From assembly GCF_001194135.2 (NCBI RefSeq), contig NC_068982.1:137699209-137763208 (forward strand): a stretch of DNA of 64,000 nucleotides, written 5' to 3'. Both the position numbers and the translations under genes were made by a program. Source of the stretch: Octopus bimaculoides (Eukaryota). Shown here in pieces: positions 18,101 through 48,100 of this stretch (position 1 is the stretch's first letter; each line of letters opens with the position of its first letter). Below the pieces are notes generated by a model. It worked only from the letters and a program-made list of their open reading frames with translations, searched no databases and was not told the DNA's origin.

Positions 18101-21100
18101 ATTATTTTAAAAAATTTGATATAATCCTCTGATTTCAATAATACTGAGGTCTACACGCTGCAGACTTACTTTATTGTTGTCATCATCATCATCATTTAGC
18201 GTCCGTTTTCCATGCTGGCATAGGTTAGACCAGTGGTTCTCCAAGGGTTCCATATGTAAGAATTTTGTGGGTTGACGTAACAAAATAGTAAATTGGGGAT
18301 CCACAACAGTATTTTAAGGGCCCCTGAAAAAATTTTGCTCTAGATGTATGTATTGGTGGGTATTTCAAGAAACAGCCAGGTTTCTTTCTCTAACATTTTA
18401 CATAATTCAACCTACAGAAGTTAATGTGTGAAAAACAAAATGGGAATTTTGAATGAAGTTTCAATAAAACTAGTTTTTAAACATTGAATGATTATGGGGT
18501 CCACCAGACTAAAATAATATTTCAAAGGGGTCCATAGATTAAAAATGGCTGAGAACCCCTGGGTGAGAGAGTTTAACTGGAACTGGTAAACCGGAGTGTT
18601 GCACCAGGCTCCAGCCTGATTTTGACTTGGTTTCTCCCTAATGCCAAACAATCCAAGAGTGTAGTGGGTGTCTTTTACATGTCACTGGCATCTGATGTCA
18701 CCAAAATGTTGATCTCACATCTGACAACACCATGTGACCCGTCTTGATCAATTTCAGGGTCGATAAATTAAGTCCCAGATGCGTACTGGGGTCGAACTAA
18801 TCGACTGGCCCTTTCTCTCAAAATTTCGGGCCTTGTGTCTAGAGTAGAAAAGAATATTTAATATTTCATCATAAATTTCCACAATTCTCATATATTACTT
18901 ATGAACTTCTTTTATATTTCAGAGATCTCAGCCAAAATGAAATCACGACTATTAAAAAAGAGTCTTTCCAAGGTCTTAGCAATTTAAAACACTTGTAAGT
19001 TGGATCAGACTTGTTGATAATATTTCACTGACGTTTCTGAATTATTTCTCTCATTCCTTATTATTTCTCTGAATTATTTCNNNNNNNNNNNNNNNNNNNN
19101 NNNNNNNNNNNNNNNNNNNNNNNNNNNNNNNNNNNNNNNNNNNNNNNNNNNNNNNNNNNNNNNNNNNNNNNNNNNNNNNNNNNNNNNNNNNNNNNNNNNN
19201 NNNNNNNNNNNNNNNNNNNNNNNNNNNNNNNNNNNNNNNNNNNNNNNNNNNNNNNNNNNNNNNNNNNNNNNNNNNNNNNNNNNNNNNNNNNNNNNNNNNN
19301 NNNNNNNNNNNNNNNNNNNNNNNNNNNNNNNNNNNNNNNNNNNNNNNNNNNNNNNNNNNNNNNNNNNNNNNNNNNNNNNNNNNNNNNNNNNNNNNNNNNN
19401 NNNNNNNNNNNNNNNNNNNNNNNNNNNNNNNNNNNNNNNNNNNNNNNNNNNNNNNNNNNNNNNNNNNNNNNNNNNNNNNNNNNNNNNNNNNNNNNNNNNN
19501 NNGGATTCCACATTTCAGCTGTCAAAGTAAAATCAAATGTTCTGCTCAAGAACACAACTAACCACTCAGCTTTGAAACCAAAGCAACAATTTTGCAATCG
19601 TAAATGCAACACGCTAATCAATATGCCACTCAACTTCACACACAAAGAATATATAGATAAATTATTCAAAATAATGAAATATAAAATCAACAAGGGAGAA
19701 GAAATTAATGAAACGTGAGTTTTATGATACAGTTAGATACTCATTATGGACAGAGACAACTGATATATTCAAGAGTTCATACTTAAATTTACCCATTCGT
19801 ACTTCTAATCATATCACATTTCATAACATTCTCTATGAATATCTTGTAGTTTCTATATCCTATGATGAACCTAATTGTTTGGTTATAATATTCAATATTT
19901 TATCACTTTACATGTTACAGGTGGCTGCATGATAATAAAATCACGAATATTAACGAAGGGTCCTTCCAAAGCATTTCCAATCTAAAAGACTTGTAAGTTT
20001 AATTAATTTTGTTGATAGTATTTCGTTGACAATACATTTTTAAATATTAAAGATTTAAGCATTTTCTTTCTTCCCCTCTCTTTCAATCTATCACGCATTT
20101 TACATATACGCATGTGTGTGTTTGTATAATAGTTTTGTGTGTATATGCATGTTTGCATACCGATGGTTCTGTATGTGTGTTTGTGTGTGAAAGTATGAAG
20201 TGAATCAATATGTGGGTGCAATTCTGTCAATAAATATTTTAAAGTGTCTTAGCTCTCAATCACTGCTGACTGAGTAGAACTCTGACCAAATGTTTGCCAA
20301 ACATGGACCTCACAGGTAACAGCATATCTACGACTACATTGTTAATACAGATTTTAAGAGAATACTGCATGACTTTTAAAGGATTTAGTTTCTCTTTTGA
20401 GCAGCTTGGAACAACAGCTATACACTCACTCTTCAATACTTCATACTATCAATAACTGTGTAGATATTTATTATTTGCAGCAATATGTGTGTGTGTGTGT
20501 GTGTGTGTGTGTGTGTGTATATGTATGTGTGCGCGGGCGCGGGCGCACGTGCATGCATGTTTCTGGTTCATATGTATGTATTATGTATGTATATATATAT
20601 ATATATATATATATNNNNNNNNNNNNNNNNNNNNNNNNNNNNNNNNNNNNNNNNNNNNNNNNNNNNNNNNNNNNNNNNNNNNNNNNNNNNNNNNNNNNNN
20701 NNNNNNNNNNNNNNNNNNNNNNNNNNNNNNNNNNNNNNNNNNNNNNNNNNNNNNNNNNNNNNNNNNNNNNNNNNNNNNNNNNNNNNNNNNNNNNNNNNNN
20801 NNNNNNNNNNNNNNNNNNNNNNNNNNNNNNNNNNNNNNNNNNNNNNNNNNNNNNNNNNNNNNNNNNNNNNNNNNNNNNNNNNNNNNNNNNNNNNNNNNNN
20901 NNNNNNNNNNNNNNNNNNNNNNNNNNNNNNNNNNNNNNNNNNNNNNNNNNNNNNNNNNNNNNNNNNNNNNNNNNNNNNNNNNNNNNNNNNNNNNNNNNNN
21001 NNNNNNNNNNNNNNNNNNNNNNNNNNNNNNNNNNNNNNNNNNNNNNNNNNNNNNNNNNNNNNNNNNNNNNNNNNNNNNNNNNNNNNNNNNNNNNNNNNNN

Positions 21101-45100: not shown

Positions 45101-48100
45101 TATTCTGTAGAGTGAAGATCTGGTTGGTTGTGCTGCATTCAGGAGAGATGCTACTCATTCCTTCAGTTAGCTTAGTCTCAGCAATTTACTTAAACCTCTT
45201 TTTTCTGACACCTAGCCTAGGCTTTACCAAGGAGGCCCAAGGAGATTCCTCTATGCTTTCCCTTTTTAAAAATCTTGAATATCACCCTAGATTGCCATTG
45301 GATTGGTATCTTTCCAGAGCTCCAAACCATCTGGCATACATGAGTCAGCCTGAGAAACTACCATCTCTATTTAAGGTCTTTTTAATATTACACATCGAAT
45401 TGCATACTCTCCAGCAGCCTCTCCATTTTCGAATACTTTAATTTCCTCTCTGACATCTGGGAGGTTAGCTTCTTCCTTAAATGCACCTCGTGTCTACCAG
45501 AAGATTCTATTGTGACTGGACTTTGGAGATAATCAAAGTATTCTCTCCAGCTTTCAAGGGTGCTCTTCTCTGCAGAGAGAAGAACTGCAGCTGAGTTCTT
45601 AATAACAGGTGTAGGAGAGTGCTTCTTTTTACAAAGTCGGTGTGTGTCTGCCATAATATTTTATTGGCTAATCTTAAATCAGCATCCAGATTAATTCTTA
45701 AACCTTTCTACAACTTAGGCTTAAACGTTTTTTACTGTCTTTGATGTAACTTTTCGTGTCTCGTGTATCACCTGCGCAAAAGGGGAGGCTTGTTTCTAAA
45801 CCAAGCTTTTTAAACATCCTTCTTTGCTCAGCTGGCCCCTTTAACTTTGTTGTGATTTTTACTTGTATTATATTTTGCTCTTTATTGTGTTATTAGGACT
45901 TCACAAAAGAGTTTTGCTTTCATTAGCATATCTAAATCAGATTGATGTAACCAATCCTTTCCAAAATACACAGACAGGAGAATCATAAAGAAAAAATAAA
46001 GAACTGCCCCATGTTCATGAGAACTTACTGAGTCAGTGAGGACTTAAAAGAACTTTCAATACTTACAAACTGGAGAAAGTAGCTTTATTGCCTTTTACTG
46101 ATTTTAACATACATAATATCTATCTATTTCATTCTTTCAGAAATTTGAGCAATAACCGAATACAAGACTATGAAGACGGCACTTTCTTATTCCTATCCAG
46201 CATAACTAACATGTAAGCTTATCAAAGTTCTTTGTTTATAAGAAAATCAAACACTTTATAAAAAGATATCTTCAAATTCACAATAGTTGGTTTGAAACAG
46301 TTGGCACTAAATAGCGATACATTTGTTTAAATCTTATTGGGTTAAAACAATTATTTCCAAGTATTGTGCTTTGTCATTGTCAAGTCAGTCAAAACCAAAA
46401 TCGCTGACGTGGCCGATGACAGTACCGTCTGATTAGCACTCGCACCACTGGAACGTTAAAAGCACATCCGAACGTGGGGTGTAACCAGCCCACTTATGAG
46501 AACCCCTCATTCATTGGACAATGAACTTTGCTTGCGAAGACCTATTGAAGACCTATTGAAACAAATCAAAATCGCTGATATGGCCGATGACAGTACCGCC
46601 TGATTGGCACTCGTGCCACTGGAACGTTAAAAGCACATCCGAACCTGGTCATTGCCAGGGCCACGGATTGGATCCCCTGCTGGTGATACGTGAAAATCAC
46701 CATTCGAGCATGATCGTTGCCACCGTCGCCTTACGGCACATGTGCCGGTGGCACGTGAAAAACAACATTCGAGCGTGATCGTTGTCAGTGCCGCCGGACT
46801 GGCTCCCGTGCAGGTAGCACATAAAAACACCATTTGACCGTGGTCGTTGCCAGAACCGCCTGACTGGCCTTCGTGCCGGTGGAACGTAAAAGCACCCACT
46901 ACACTCTCGGAGTGGTTAGCGTTAGGAAGGGCATCCAGCTGTAGAAACTTAGCCAGATCAGATTGAGCCTGGTGCAGCCTCTGGCTCACCAGTCCTCAGT
47001 CAAACCGTCCAACCCATGCCAGCATGGAAAGCGGACGTTAAACGATGATGATGATGATGAAGATAATGATGAAGTCTGCATTCAAATAACAGGTGGCCAA
47101 GATCAAAGAGACATTCAAGGATTTTTAGAGGGGCAGAGTGAGGAACGCATTGCCAGGTTCCGGAGCTGTCTTGAGCCCACAGTGGAAGCTGAGCGTGGCT
47201 AATCTGGGTAAACTGTTATCTACCAGCCATAATCTAGCTGGAGTTTTTTTATTTTTTAAAATAATTTTAGTTTTCAGTGGGATATTGTGGTTTCTTTACC
47301 TTTTATGCAAACTGTCACATTTAGCCCGAACACCCTGTACATACATACATACATACATACATACATACACACACACACAAAAACACACACATACATACAT
47401 ACATACAAAAATACCCTGCTGTTGATGTTGAAATTCCAATGAAAGACCCTTGGATCTAGGTTAGAAACCAGTTCTTTCTCTATTGGCAAGAAATCTTGAA
47501 ATAAAACTGAATAACGACATACACTCACATGCACGCATGCATGCACGCACACACACACACACACACACACACACACACACACACACACACACACACACAC
47601 GTGTTATATAGTTTCTAAATTACATGATTCTTGAGTTAAATTAAATCAAAGATTTCTCAATTGATCTTATGCAAATTTTGTTGATCTCTTTATAATTACA
47701 GTGACTTGAGACACAATAGCATGGCCTGTAGATGTCATCTGCCAGCTTTTGTTGATTATATGAACCAAGAATATAGCAGACATGTGAATGTTTTTGGCTC
47801 GTGCCTAAATGAACAGAACAGATTAATAGAAATATTGAAATATTCGCAATGTGAAAGTAGTTAAAAATTTTTCGTTGCTTTCGTTGTTACTTTATTATTA
47901 TTACCCTCATTTTGTAGGATAATGATATGACCAATAGATAAATGACCAAAAGCCTTCGCAATATTTAGCAACATACCTTTAAGTTCTGTATTGAAGCCCT
48001 GCCGATGTGCACTTCACCTTTTATATTTTTAGGGTCGATGAAATACATTATTTACATTATTATTATTATCAGGTTCATCTTTAATGTCTCTGAAGAGCAT

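Follow-up and report, generated by a model that had tools for sequence, protein, structure and literature searches.

Does a long row of similar, symmetric LRR exons in the genome of Octopus bimaculoides generate a repertoire of receptors by variable splicing, or does it encode one fixed domain of an ordinary gene? Here we surveyed and analyzed the 64,000-nucleotide stretch of DNA which carries this row (hereafter the window, whose positions are used throughout; all exons lie on the + strand). In our judgement the array quite probably encodes the constitutively spliced LRR ectodomain of an octopus GPCR of the adhesion type (aGPCR), which is so far unannotated and comes from an octopus-specific expansion of these receptors.

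The window was scanned for units which lie between AG and GT and carry an LRR motif, and exactly 17 such exons were found on the + strand, the same number as given in a preliminary description of this DNA; no further LRR-like ORFs occur in the window outside the array on either strand. The exons are 72 nt long in 16 of 17 cases, and LRR7 has 69 nt, a length which that description did not mention. All 17 are of phase 2-2, one leading base completing a leucine codon (TT with A or TT with G), and any subset is removable in frame because every exon is symmetric, as had been claimed. Strong consensus splice sites were found at 17/17 acceptors and 17/17 donors, the donor being GTAAGT in 14 exons and a pyrimidine tract standing ahead of CAG in all acceptors. 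From LRR1 to LRR17 the first variable residue runs D,W,D,S,Y,H,W,S,Y,H,W,S,Y,H,Y,S,N, in full agreement with the series reported before.

The exons were then placed on RNA contigs. LRR1 (D type, 18923..18994) is joined to LRR2 (W type, 19921..19992) by a GT..AG joint from 18994 to 19921 in three RNA runs, and LRR3 (D type, 23300..23371), seen in RNA of four runs, stands directly after LRR2 in a 193-nt contig. Two contigs from independent runs, of 2240 nt (X26) and 2245 nt (X20), cover LRR4 to LRR15 without a break and in the order of the genome, and this all-inclusive order is also that of shorter contigs in three further runs. In X26, LRR4 (S type, 25965..26036; contig 94-165) passes into LRR5 (Y type, 26420..26491; contig 166-237) through a joint from 26036 to 26420 present in three runs, and the loose end beyond LRR5 is the head of LRR6 (H type, 27553..27624; contig 238-309 by cross-match and arithmetic), whose junction with LRR5 was read directly. 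LRR7 (W type, 28932..29000), one codon shorter, and LRR8 (S type, 30529..30600) account for the 141 letters between LRR6 and LRR9 (69+72), and the tail of LRR8 is seen ahead of LRR9 in an X27 contig. LRR9 (Y type, 31419..31490; contig 451-522, 0 mismatches) is joined from 31490 to 32441, again GT..AG, to LRR10 (H type, 32441..32512; contig 523-594). The 72 nt beginning with GT which contigs of four runs show between LRR10 and LRR12 represent LRR11 (W type, 35215..35286). LRR12 (S type, 36847..36918; contig 667-738) has a loose end made of its own tail and the head of LRR13 (Y type, 37258..37329; contig 739-810 by arithmetic). LRR14 (H type, 38321..38392; contig 811-882) is joined by GT..AG from 38392 to 40367 to LRR15 (40367..40438; contig 883-954), which has Y at x5 and is of W type by flank scores and its xLYxNEI motif. 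The exon scan added LRR16 (S type, 43154..43225) and LRR17 (N type, 46141..46212), which ends in AT and not TT. The positions of LRR4, LRR5, LRR9, LRR10, LRR14 and LRR15 apply to both long contigs. The 573 nt which separate LRR5 from LRR14 in them are exactly 7x72+69, and junctions 1-2, 2-3, 4-5, 5-6, 8-9, 9-10, 10-11, 12-13 and 14-15 were read directly. The tested exons, LRR1 to LRR15, are all present in the main mRNA and follow one another there as in the genome.

The gene is larger than the array described before: it starts at 8910 and runs through LRRCT, linker, HRM and GAIN exons off the window end. That the array belongs to the ectodomain of an aGPCR-like gene had been missed. The coding part of exon 1 (8910..9100), located by tblastn with P0002 and P0121 and present in 7 RNA runs, comprises the Met, a signal-peptide-like hydrophobic stretch, an LRRNT-like Cys cluster (CQTCTC...C) and PPDVVSL, with which the first LRR begins; the exon closes with TT before GTAAGT, in phase 2, and P0122 equals exon 1 plus LRR1, LRR2 and LRR3 exactly. 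Behind the array stands an LRRCT-like exon (47702..47856, ...SQCE; tblastn with P0002/P0121, 75-77% identity) with GTAGTT as presumed donor. The next exon (52150..52250, ...KDISKS; 101 nt, phase 1 to 0) is a prediction only, the best of 53 candidates compared with the paralogues P0132 and P0002; its acceptor is good and its donor is GTGAGT. Two more linker exons were found by tblastn at 53798..53850 and 54937..55088 (...VEII), the latter with sequence words present in RNA runs. The linker domain of ~100 aa has a predicted beta-alpha-beta-beta-alpha pattern and no Pfam match, and AlphaFold models it poorly (pLDDT 43), with generic ferredoxin-like fold matches only. HRM-like exon A (57458..57572, CNEDT...WPITKVG...CHANIATRY) was found by tblastn with P0123 and matches Pfam HRM at E=1.7e-4, under the curated cut-off (22.3 vs 26.2 bits). 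It is followed by HRM-like exon B (58699..58868), GAIN N-terminal exon A (61855..62086) and GAIN exon B (62478..62649), which are 78%, 86% and 88% identical to P0127, respectively.

These 3' exons match octopus proteins named adhesion GPCR G6-like/A2-like and ADGRA2/3 GAIN with E down to 9e-76, and P0127, to which they are 78-88% identical, has GPS (E 1.3e-13) and 7tm_2. The O. sinensis gene adjoining P0002 has LRR_8, GPS and 7tm_2. The LRR part of the gene is in no annotated protein found, the best database match having 44% identity. The window gives the architecture signal peptide, LRRNT, at least 19 typical LRRs of 24 residues with one per exon, LRRCT, linker, HRM and the first part of GAIN; GPS and 7TM probably follow the GAIN exons and are expected past the 3' end of the window.

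The LRR part might instead be a separate secreted LRR-only protein, its mRNA ending after LRRCT and the downstream exons belonging to a neighbouring aGPCR gene. Read-through of the LRRCT donor does meet a stop 2 codons later, and P0121, the O. sinensis model, terminates likewise (ENYKLFQ, then stop), but such a transcript would have its 3' end at 48843-48848, a place lacking a poly(A) signal, whereas the spliced alternative matches the contigs to 3-8 nt, the exons after LRR15 summing to 1294 nt against the 1286 and 1291 nt which remain in the two long contigs. In the paralogue loci L002 and L003, the 10 kb ahead of the HRM/GAIN exons contain no LRR exon; on the other hand, the paralogue models P0132 and P0002+P0125 unite LRRCT, linker and HRM in a single protein. 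The linker exon and the GAIN exon (A) occur in those RNA runs which have exon 1 and are missing where it is missing, and splice phases are compatible all along the gene. On the arithmetic, the co-occurrence in runs and the paralogue models, we infer a single mRNA for the LRR part and the HRM/GAIN part, and we consider a separate secreted protein unlikely.

Less likely still is the reading put forward in the preliminary description, in which the symmetric cassette exons are combined variably as in Dscam, or diversified somatically as in VLR, to give a recognition repertoire. Every subset of exons can indeed be removed in frame, and several splice variants are reported (PMC11378527) for the LRR-ROCO genes of brown algae, whose exons are likewise of 72 bp and phase 2. 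However, no order but the all-inclusive one was seen in the contigs of five runs, of which two are long and independent and several short, with LRR4 to LRR15 free of skipping; no joint between non-adjacent exons was found in the five array stretches examined in these contigs, and the splice sites are uniformly strong. The O. sinensis model P0121 splices exon 1 straight to LRRCT in frame, but this is because the array is genomically absent there, not skipped. A VLR-like process is further opposed by the ordinary splice sites of these exons within one gene, unlike VLR donor cassettes. The splicing data are assembler contigs, which drop rare variants, and are compatible with rare isoforms; one raw-read RNA run gave zero reads on the exons. 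Combinatorial splicing is not supported, and our verdict is that the LRR domain is an ordinary constitutive exon-per-repeat array and not a Dscam-like shuffling generator.

The array is real and in frame, yet incomplete in the assembly. RNA shows LRR1 directly spliced to LRR2 across the gap 19081-19502 and LRR2 to LRR3 across the gaps 20615-21338 and 22275-22639, and contig coordinates make LRR7 and LRR8 (gap 29064-29418) as well as LRR10 and LRR11 (gap 34288-34297) contiguous; a further gap lies between LRR16 and LRR17 (44346-44640). Between LRR3 and LRR4, where gaps are found at 23571-23670 and 24199-24336, loose ends of RNA contigs reveal at least two 72-nt exons absent from the window. Exon D', found after LRR3 in RNA, is identical to LRR1 over its first 28 nt, as far as read, and exon W', at a contig end ahead of LRR4, ends in CTTCGAAAACCTTTCCAGTTTAGAAGACTT (protein ...FENLSSLEDL); their probable site is the interval 23571..24336. 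The array therefore comprises 19 exons or more. The eight gaps within or next to it, and 93% identity between the intron segments 21614-21826 and 23671-23880, could suggest that mis-scaffolded haplotypes or collapsed repeats inflated the exon count and the periodicity, but this is hardly credible as the exons differ by 17-59% in nucleotides, far above allelic divergence, their order in mRNA is the assembled order, the region is present in DNA runs from several studies, and the error found is the opposite one, of missing exons.

Growth by duplication of a four-exon S-Y-H-W module, as proposed earlier, was borne out by both exons and introns. Exon pairs at a distance which is a multiple of 4 are 71% identical vs 65% for others (permutation p ~5e-5), with no signal at the other periods from 2 to 6 in the same test, and upstream intron flanks pair by repeat type in flank scores and self-BLAST. 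The dS between four-exon modules is 0.6-0.9, and the duplications are therefore old. LRR3 is a hybrid exon, resembling LRR1 in its 5' flank and 5' half and LRR2 in its 3' half and 3' flank. In O. sinensis, the collinear locus (L001) follows the window up to 18752 and again from 47374, and between these flanks no LRR exon was found in the single assembly used, the whole 28.6-kb array being missing, and exon 1 joins LRRCT in frame in P0121. The exon number is thus not fixed across species, and this one assembly points to loss of the array in O. sinensis.

Variability among the LRR exons is concentrated at the concave-face and ascending-loop positions x2, x3, x5, x7, x8 and x10, while L4, N9, I11 and F19 are invariant, which agrees with the conserved backbone and variable concave face described before. 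Within each type, old duplicates keep the type-defining x5 and x7, and the S-Y-H-W ladder is therefore a super-repeat which has been maintained, and not a diversifying site. The dN/dS of whole modules is 0.34-0.46, which speaks against diversification, and pooled concave sites reach ~1 on the basis of only ~10 synonymous differences.

Vertebrate ADGRA2/ADGRA3 (GPR124/GPR125) carry N-terminal LRRs and LRRCT, then HRM, GAIN/GPS and 7TM. The octopus gene has the same domain order, GPS and 7TM being expected, and some homologues bear a weak match to Pfam PF26588 (ADGRA2/3 GAIN domain); unlike it, ADGRA2/3 have ~4 LRRs rather than at least 19, and an Ig domain between LRRCT and HRM in place of the unclassified ~100-aa alpha/beta domain. 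LGR4/5/6 and the glycoprotein-hormone receptors share one LRR per ~72-nt exon, phase-2 introns and a long horseshoe, and LGR4 is the best solved-structure match (E 2.5e-64) to the paralogue profile A3, which takes its LRR part from P0002; they differ in their rhodopsin-type 7TM and hinge region, without HRM or GAIN, and we know of no four-exon super-repeat in them. The phase-2 rule of gonadotropin receptors is quoted in PMC11378527. Brown-algal LRR-ROCO genes and the 90-bp LRR exons of Tetrahymena likewise form tandem arrays of same-length, phase-2, one-repeat exons, evolving through exon duplication and unequal crossing-over, and in LRR-ROCO positive selection falls on sites of the concave face (PMC11378527, PMC6564038); these are cytoplasmic GTPase or unknown proteins of unrelated eukaryotes, and the alternative splicing reported for LRR-ROCO was not seen in the octopus RNA contigs. 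Dscam and lamprey VLR resemble the array only in the general notion of one locus with many similar recognition modules: Dscam uses mutually exclusive splicing, whereas the tested octopus exons are all included in order, and VLR assembles non-exon cassettes somatically, whereas the octopus gene uses ordinary exons.

The homology of the 3' exons to octopus adhesion GPCR G6-like/A2-like proteins agrees with the octopus-specific 'group 3' aGPCR expansion of Ritschard et al. 2019 (PMC6408891), in which LRRs are reported in 5/22 members, together with co-localised genes and signs of positive selection; an exon-per-repeat array, a four-exon module or loss between species is not described in the passages of that paper which were found by term search. 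The LRR array is evolutionarily labile. It was built by old tandem duplications of the four-exon module, and unequal recombination between homologous exons and introns is still remodelling it, as indicated by the hybrid LRR3, by D' identical to LRR1 as read and by the complete loss of the array from O. sinensis; each such event preserves the reading frame, as all exons are of phase 2-2 and multiples of 3. Together the LRRs should form one long horseshoe with the S-Y-H-W ladder at x5 of its concave face, through which the ectodomain may bind a ligand and the receptor would signal like other aGPCRs.

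The array consists of 17 exons on the forward strand (LRR1-LRR17, 18923-46212), each coding for a single leucine-rich repeat, which were tracked by a scan for units bounded by AG and GT and carrying an LRR motif. The surrounding window is AT-rich animal DNA (GC 37%) with 14 assembly gaps, and no further LRR-like ORF was found in it besides these 17 exons. As the preliminary description had stated, all 17 are symmetric phase 2-2 exons with lengths that are multiples of three. Sixteen measure 72 nt and LRR7 (28932-29000) measures 69 nt; the leading single base of each completes a leucine codon, TT followed by A or by G. 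The residue series read earlier also agrees with the exon translation, the residue after that leucine running D,W,D,S,Y,H,W,S,Y,H,W,S,Y,H,Y,S,N from LRR1 to LRR17. This residue (x5 of the repeat) is solvent-exposed on the concave beta-strand. L4, N9, I11 and F19 do not vary in any of the 17 repeats, giving 24-residue LxxLxLxxNxL tandem repeats with a Pfam LRR_8 match at E=4.7e-97, and the most variable positions are x2, x3, x5, x7, x8, x10, x12 and x13, a pattern of variable and invariant positions that is usual for LRRs. Every acceptor of the array is a pyrimidine tract followed by CAG, and the donor is GTAAGT in 14 of the 17 exons. The exons carry one repeat each, are of near-constant length, have phase 2 at either end and show traces of duplication and unequal crossing-over, and so form an exon-per-repeat, phase-2 LRR array.

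No annotated protein was found for the LRR part, and its best animal match was P0002, an Octopus sinensis protein named "LRRC15-like" (44% identity). The gene was extended in both directions by tblastn with P0002 and later matches. Exon 1 (8910-9100) opens with what resembles a signal peptide, carries an LRRNT-like cysteine cluster and ends in phase 2. Downstream of the array lie an LRRCT-like exon (47702-47856, tblastn), three linker exons (52150-52250, predicted; 53798-53850 and 54937-55088, both by tblastn), two HRM-like exons (57458-57572 and 58699-58868), an N-terminal GAIN exon (61855-62086) and a further GAIN exon (62478-62649), after which the gene runs beyond the window. The cysteine patterns of both caps are visible (CxxCxC..C for LRRNT, NxxxCxCxLxxF..C..C for LRRCT); Pfam gave no cap match on the window protein, and LRRNT scored on the paralogue P0002 only, at 25.2 bits against a cut-off of 25.8. 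HRM scored 22.3 bits (E 1.7e-4), under its cut-off of 26.2, with the Cys/Trp pattern present. No SEA or other Pfam match was found for the linker, its AlphaFold model is poor (pLDDT 43), and the Foldseek matches were all to generic folds of the ferredoxin-like kind (E>1e-3); "SEA-like" is a guess for it.

The 3' part matches octopus proteins only, under names such as "adhesion GPCR G6-like", "A2-like" and "ADGRA2/3 GAIN domain-containing", with E down to 9e-76. Its exons are 78-88% identical to the O. vulgaris homologue P0127 (86-88% for the GAIN exons), and the later part of P0127 matches Pfam GPS (E 1.3e-13); P0127 also has 7tm_2 (E 9.7e-6). Only N-terminal GAIN exons fall inside the window, so GPS and the 7TM region would lie past its 3' end. 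In O. sinensis, a neighbour of P0002 has LRR_8, GPS and 7tm_2 together, and the P0002 gene itself spans 229 kb. This octopus-specific adhesion-GPCR expansion has been described by Ritschard et al. 2019 (PMC6408891), where LRRs are given for 5 of 22 members, positive selection is indicated and expression is found in axial nerve cord, skin and suckers.

LRRCT, linker and HRM are joined in paralogue models, which are also in line with an LRR part joined to an HRM/GAIN part. RNA runs that contain exon 1 also contain a linker exon and a GAIN exon, and the runs without one of the three lack the other two as well; the exon lengths after LRR15 total 1294 nt, against 1286 and 1291 nt left in the two long array contigs; and a transcript reading through past LRRCT would end at a place with no poly(A) signal. 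From this co-occurrence, the length arithmetic and the missing signal at the read-through end, we infer that one mRNA probably carries both the LRR part and the HRM/GAIN part.

Some observations concern paralogous models and loci. Past the donor at 55088, the ORF at 54938-55237 ends in SINE-derived ...GAGVAVW and a stop; P0002 ends in ...EMAVW and a stop, and its near-identical partner P0125 runs on into HRM and GAIN. The annotated C-terminus of P0002 is therefore probably a read-through into a SINE. At the paralogue locus L002 (O. sinensis scaffold VCDQ01009665.1, 14017-28264) there are two tandem partial HRM/GAIN sets, which look like a local duplication within the family, and no LRR exons were found within 10 kb upstream of them. 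At the other paralogue locus, L003, checked with a DNA pattern only, the HRM/GAIN exons likewise showed no LRR exons within 10 kb upstream.

The proposed four-exon periodicity was upheld. Among LRR4-16, pairs of exons separated by four positions or a multiple of four share 71% identity, compared with 65% for all remaining pairs (permutation p ~5e-5), and periods 2, 3, 5 and 6 gave no signal there. By self-BLAST and flank alignments the homology reaches into the introns and follows exon type, with LRR4, 8, 12 and 16 forming the S type, LRR5, 9 and 13 the Y type, LRR6, 10 and 14 the H type, LRR2, 7 and 11 (and LRR15 by its flank) the W type and LRR1 and LRR3 the D type. Since x5 and x7 are conserved inside each type, the S-Y-H-W ladder is a maintained super-repeat. 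Comparison of the three full modules gives a dS of 0.6-0.9 and a dN/dS of 0.34-0.46. In the codon-wise contrast between concave face and backbone, the pooled concave sites have a dN/dS of ~1, against ~0.4 at the remaining sites, but the concave value rests on only ~10 synonymous changes.

LRR3 is a hybrid: up to its middle, 5' flank included, it matches LRR1, and from there through the 3' flank it matches LRR2 (the flanks align with scores of 88 and 94). We read it, from this alignment pattern, as the footprint of an unequal crossing-over. The intron segments 21614-21826 and 23671-23880, which adjoin gaps, are 93% identical, far above the rest of the array; this suggests a recent local duplication around LRR2 and LRR3, the same region that holds the unassembled exons.

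Splicing passes straight across the gaps in the LRR1-2, LRR2-3, LRR7-8 and LRR10-11 introns. Downstream of LRR3, the next 28 nt of the mRNA are the same as the start of LRR1, and the exon preceding LRR4 ends in CTTCGAAAACCTTTCCAGTTTAGAAGACTT, a sequence not found in the window. Overlaps of exactly k-1 (30 nt) fit a path from LRR3 through D' (the unitig of LRR1) and W' to LRR4, D' and W' being the LRR exons missing from the assembly. Because this mRNA sequence is not in the window, at least two exons must sit in one or both of the gaps 23571-23670 and 24199-24336, which brings the array to 19 exons or more. In run X26 the depth of the LRR1 unitig is ~1.5x that of adjacent unitigs, which is expected for two genomic copies. 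In run X20 the same unitig carries G for A at position 18954 at full depth (Lys to Glu at x15), which is either a polymorphism or a difference common to both identical D-type exons.

The preliminary description had raised isoform diversification of the Dscam or VLR kind, and this was not supported. All splicing evidence comes from assembler contigs, which drop rare variants. Exon 1 is present in several RNA runs of the same organism, and long array contigs were found in two independent ones (X26, 2240 nt; X20, 2245 nt). On the X26 contig LRR4 (94-165), LRR5 (166-237), LRR9 (451-522), LRR10 (523-594), LRR14 (811-882) and LRR15 (883-954) are placed with 0 mismatches each, and the joints among these six are GT..AG. 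The distance from LRR5 to LRR14 is 573 nt, or 7x72+69, which is LRR6 to LRR13 exactly; cross-matches indicate an exon of H type at 238-309 and one of S type at 667-738, the interval from LRR6 to LRR9 is 141 letters (69+72), and a 72-nt exon starting with GT stands between LRR10 and LRR12. Junctions 5 to 6, 8 to 9 and 12 to 13 were read from loose contig ends. LRR1, LRR2 and LRR3 are joined in this order in short contigs of three or four runs, and the database fragment P0122 is exactly exon 1-LRR1-LRR2-LRR3.

No joint between non-adjacent exons was seen in the contigs of five RNA runs, which give a single exon order, the genomic one, with nothing skipped; in the raw-read run X24 no reads fell on the array exons. 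Dscam-like combinatorial diversity is thus not supported by the available contig data, and minor isoforms may exist. Somatic assembly of the VLR type does not fit either, the exons having canonical AG/GT borders in one gene and the mRNA following germline order. The apparent skipping of LRR9 and LRR10, which were absent at 95% likeness, is an artefact, as at 90% the X26 long contig covers both with 0 mismatches; pieces cross-matching paralogous exons had probably lowered the overall likeness of the long contig. A circular RNA or back-splice as source of the junction from LRR3 to LRR1-like sequence was rejected, the junction contig having the depth of the linear contigs in four runs.

In O. sinensis, locus L001 follows the window collinearly up to 18752 and again over 47374-51030, with 85-91% of nucleotides identical. 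Between these, the 28.6 kb with all LRR exons are replaced by 2.9 kb of unrelated, gap-free sequence in which no LRR-like ORF was found; the downstream linker exons were not found in L001 either. P0121, the O. sinensis protein of this locus, has 122 aa, in which exon 1 leads directly into LRRCT. On this comparison exon number is not fixed between species, at least 19 LRRs standing against none at the collinear locus. As the module duplications (dS of 0.6-0.9) are far older than the divergence of ~0.1 between the loci, the simplest reading, for the one assembly compared, would be that the array was lost in the O. sinensis lineage or that L001 is a decaying copy.

The left breakpoint of this absence (18752) is the exact start of a SINE-like fragment. 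Such fragments were seen at 18752-18862, 23124-23234, 29854-29999 and 39228-39584, with depths of 10^4 to 10^5 in every RNA run. A dispersed repeat, with tandem units of ~65 nt inside it (TGCCAGTGCCGCTGGAC...), has five copies in the window (9779-10065, 25132-25385, 46507-47065, 48376-48834 and 59670-60133), two of them flanking the LRRCT exon, and several more in L001. In the LRR10-LRR11 intron, a tract of 500 bp (33015-33513) is GA-rich, of low complexity and strongly GC-skewed. ORFs resembling transposon remnants lie upstream of exon 1 (6096-6617, reverse strand) and in intron 1 (12890-13306, forward strand), and one of the two has a CCHC zinc-knuckle motif (CYLCNSETHLNNDC).

One 72-nt phase-2 exon per LRR is known from gonadotropin and LGR receptors and from brown-algal ROCO genes, and for the latter shuffling, alternative splicing and the Dscam analogy have already been argued (PMC11378527); Tetrahymena has arrays of 90-bp phase-2 LRR exons (PMC6564038). 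The octopus array resembles all of these in having one repeat per phase-2 exon. It is a real and ordinary gene architecture in a known family and opens no new mechanism of receptor diversification. The new facts are local: an unannotated gene, at least 19 LRRs, gap-hidden exons, a hybrid exon and a between-species array difference. Current assemblies and annotations fragment such genes, as in P0121, P0122, P0123 and P0002.

The exon design permits expansion, hybridisation and deletion in frame over evolutionary time; symmetric phase-2 exons offer a clean case of such frame-preserving change, illustrated by the presence and absence of the array in two octopuses. From what is generally known of LRRs and adhesion GPCRs, the array exons would together build a single unbroken horseshoe with a partner bound to the concave side, and signalling would pass by way of GAIN/GPS and 7TM. 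It is a tentative and rather unlikely proposal that the recombination-prone in-frame array lets ectodomain length and concave pattern change rapidly in this octopus-specific family, between species and perhaps individuals, and that low-level skipping might add isoforms which contigs cannot show. If true, such rapid change would diversify cell recognition in arms and suckers in parallel with the protocadherin expansion. The receptor recovered by the analysis is unannotated, has an ectodomain of unusual length and comes from a family already linked to the octopus arm, sucker and skin.
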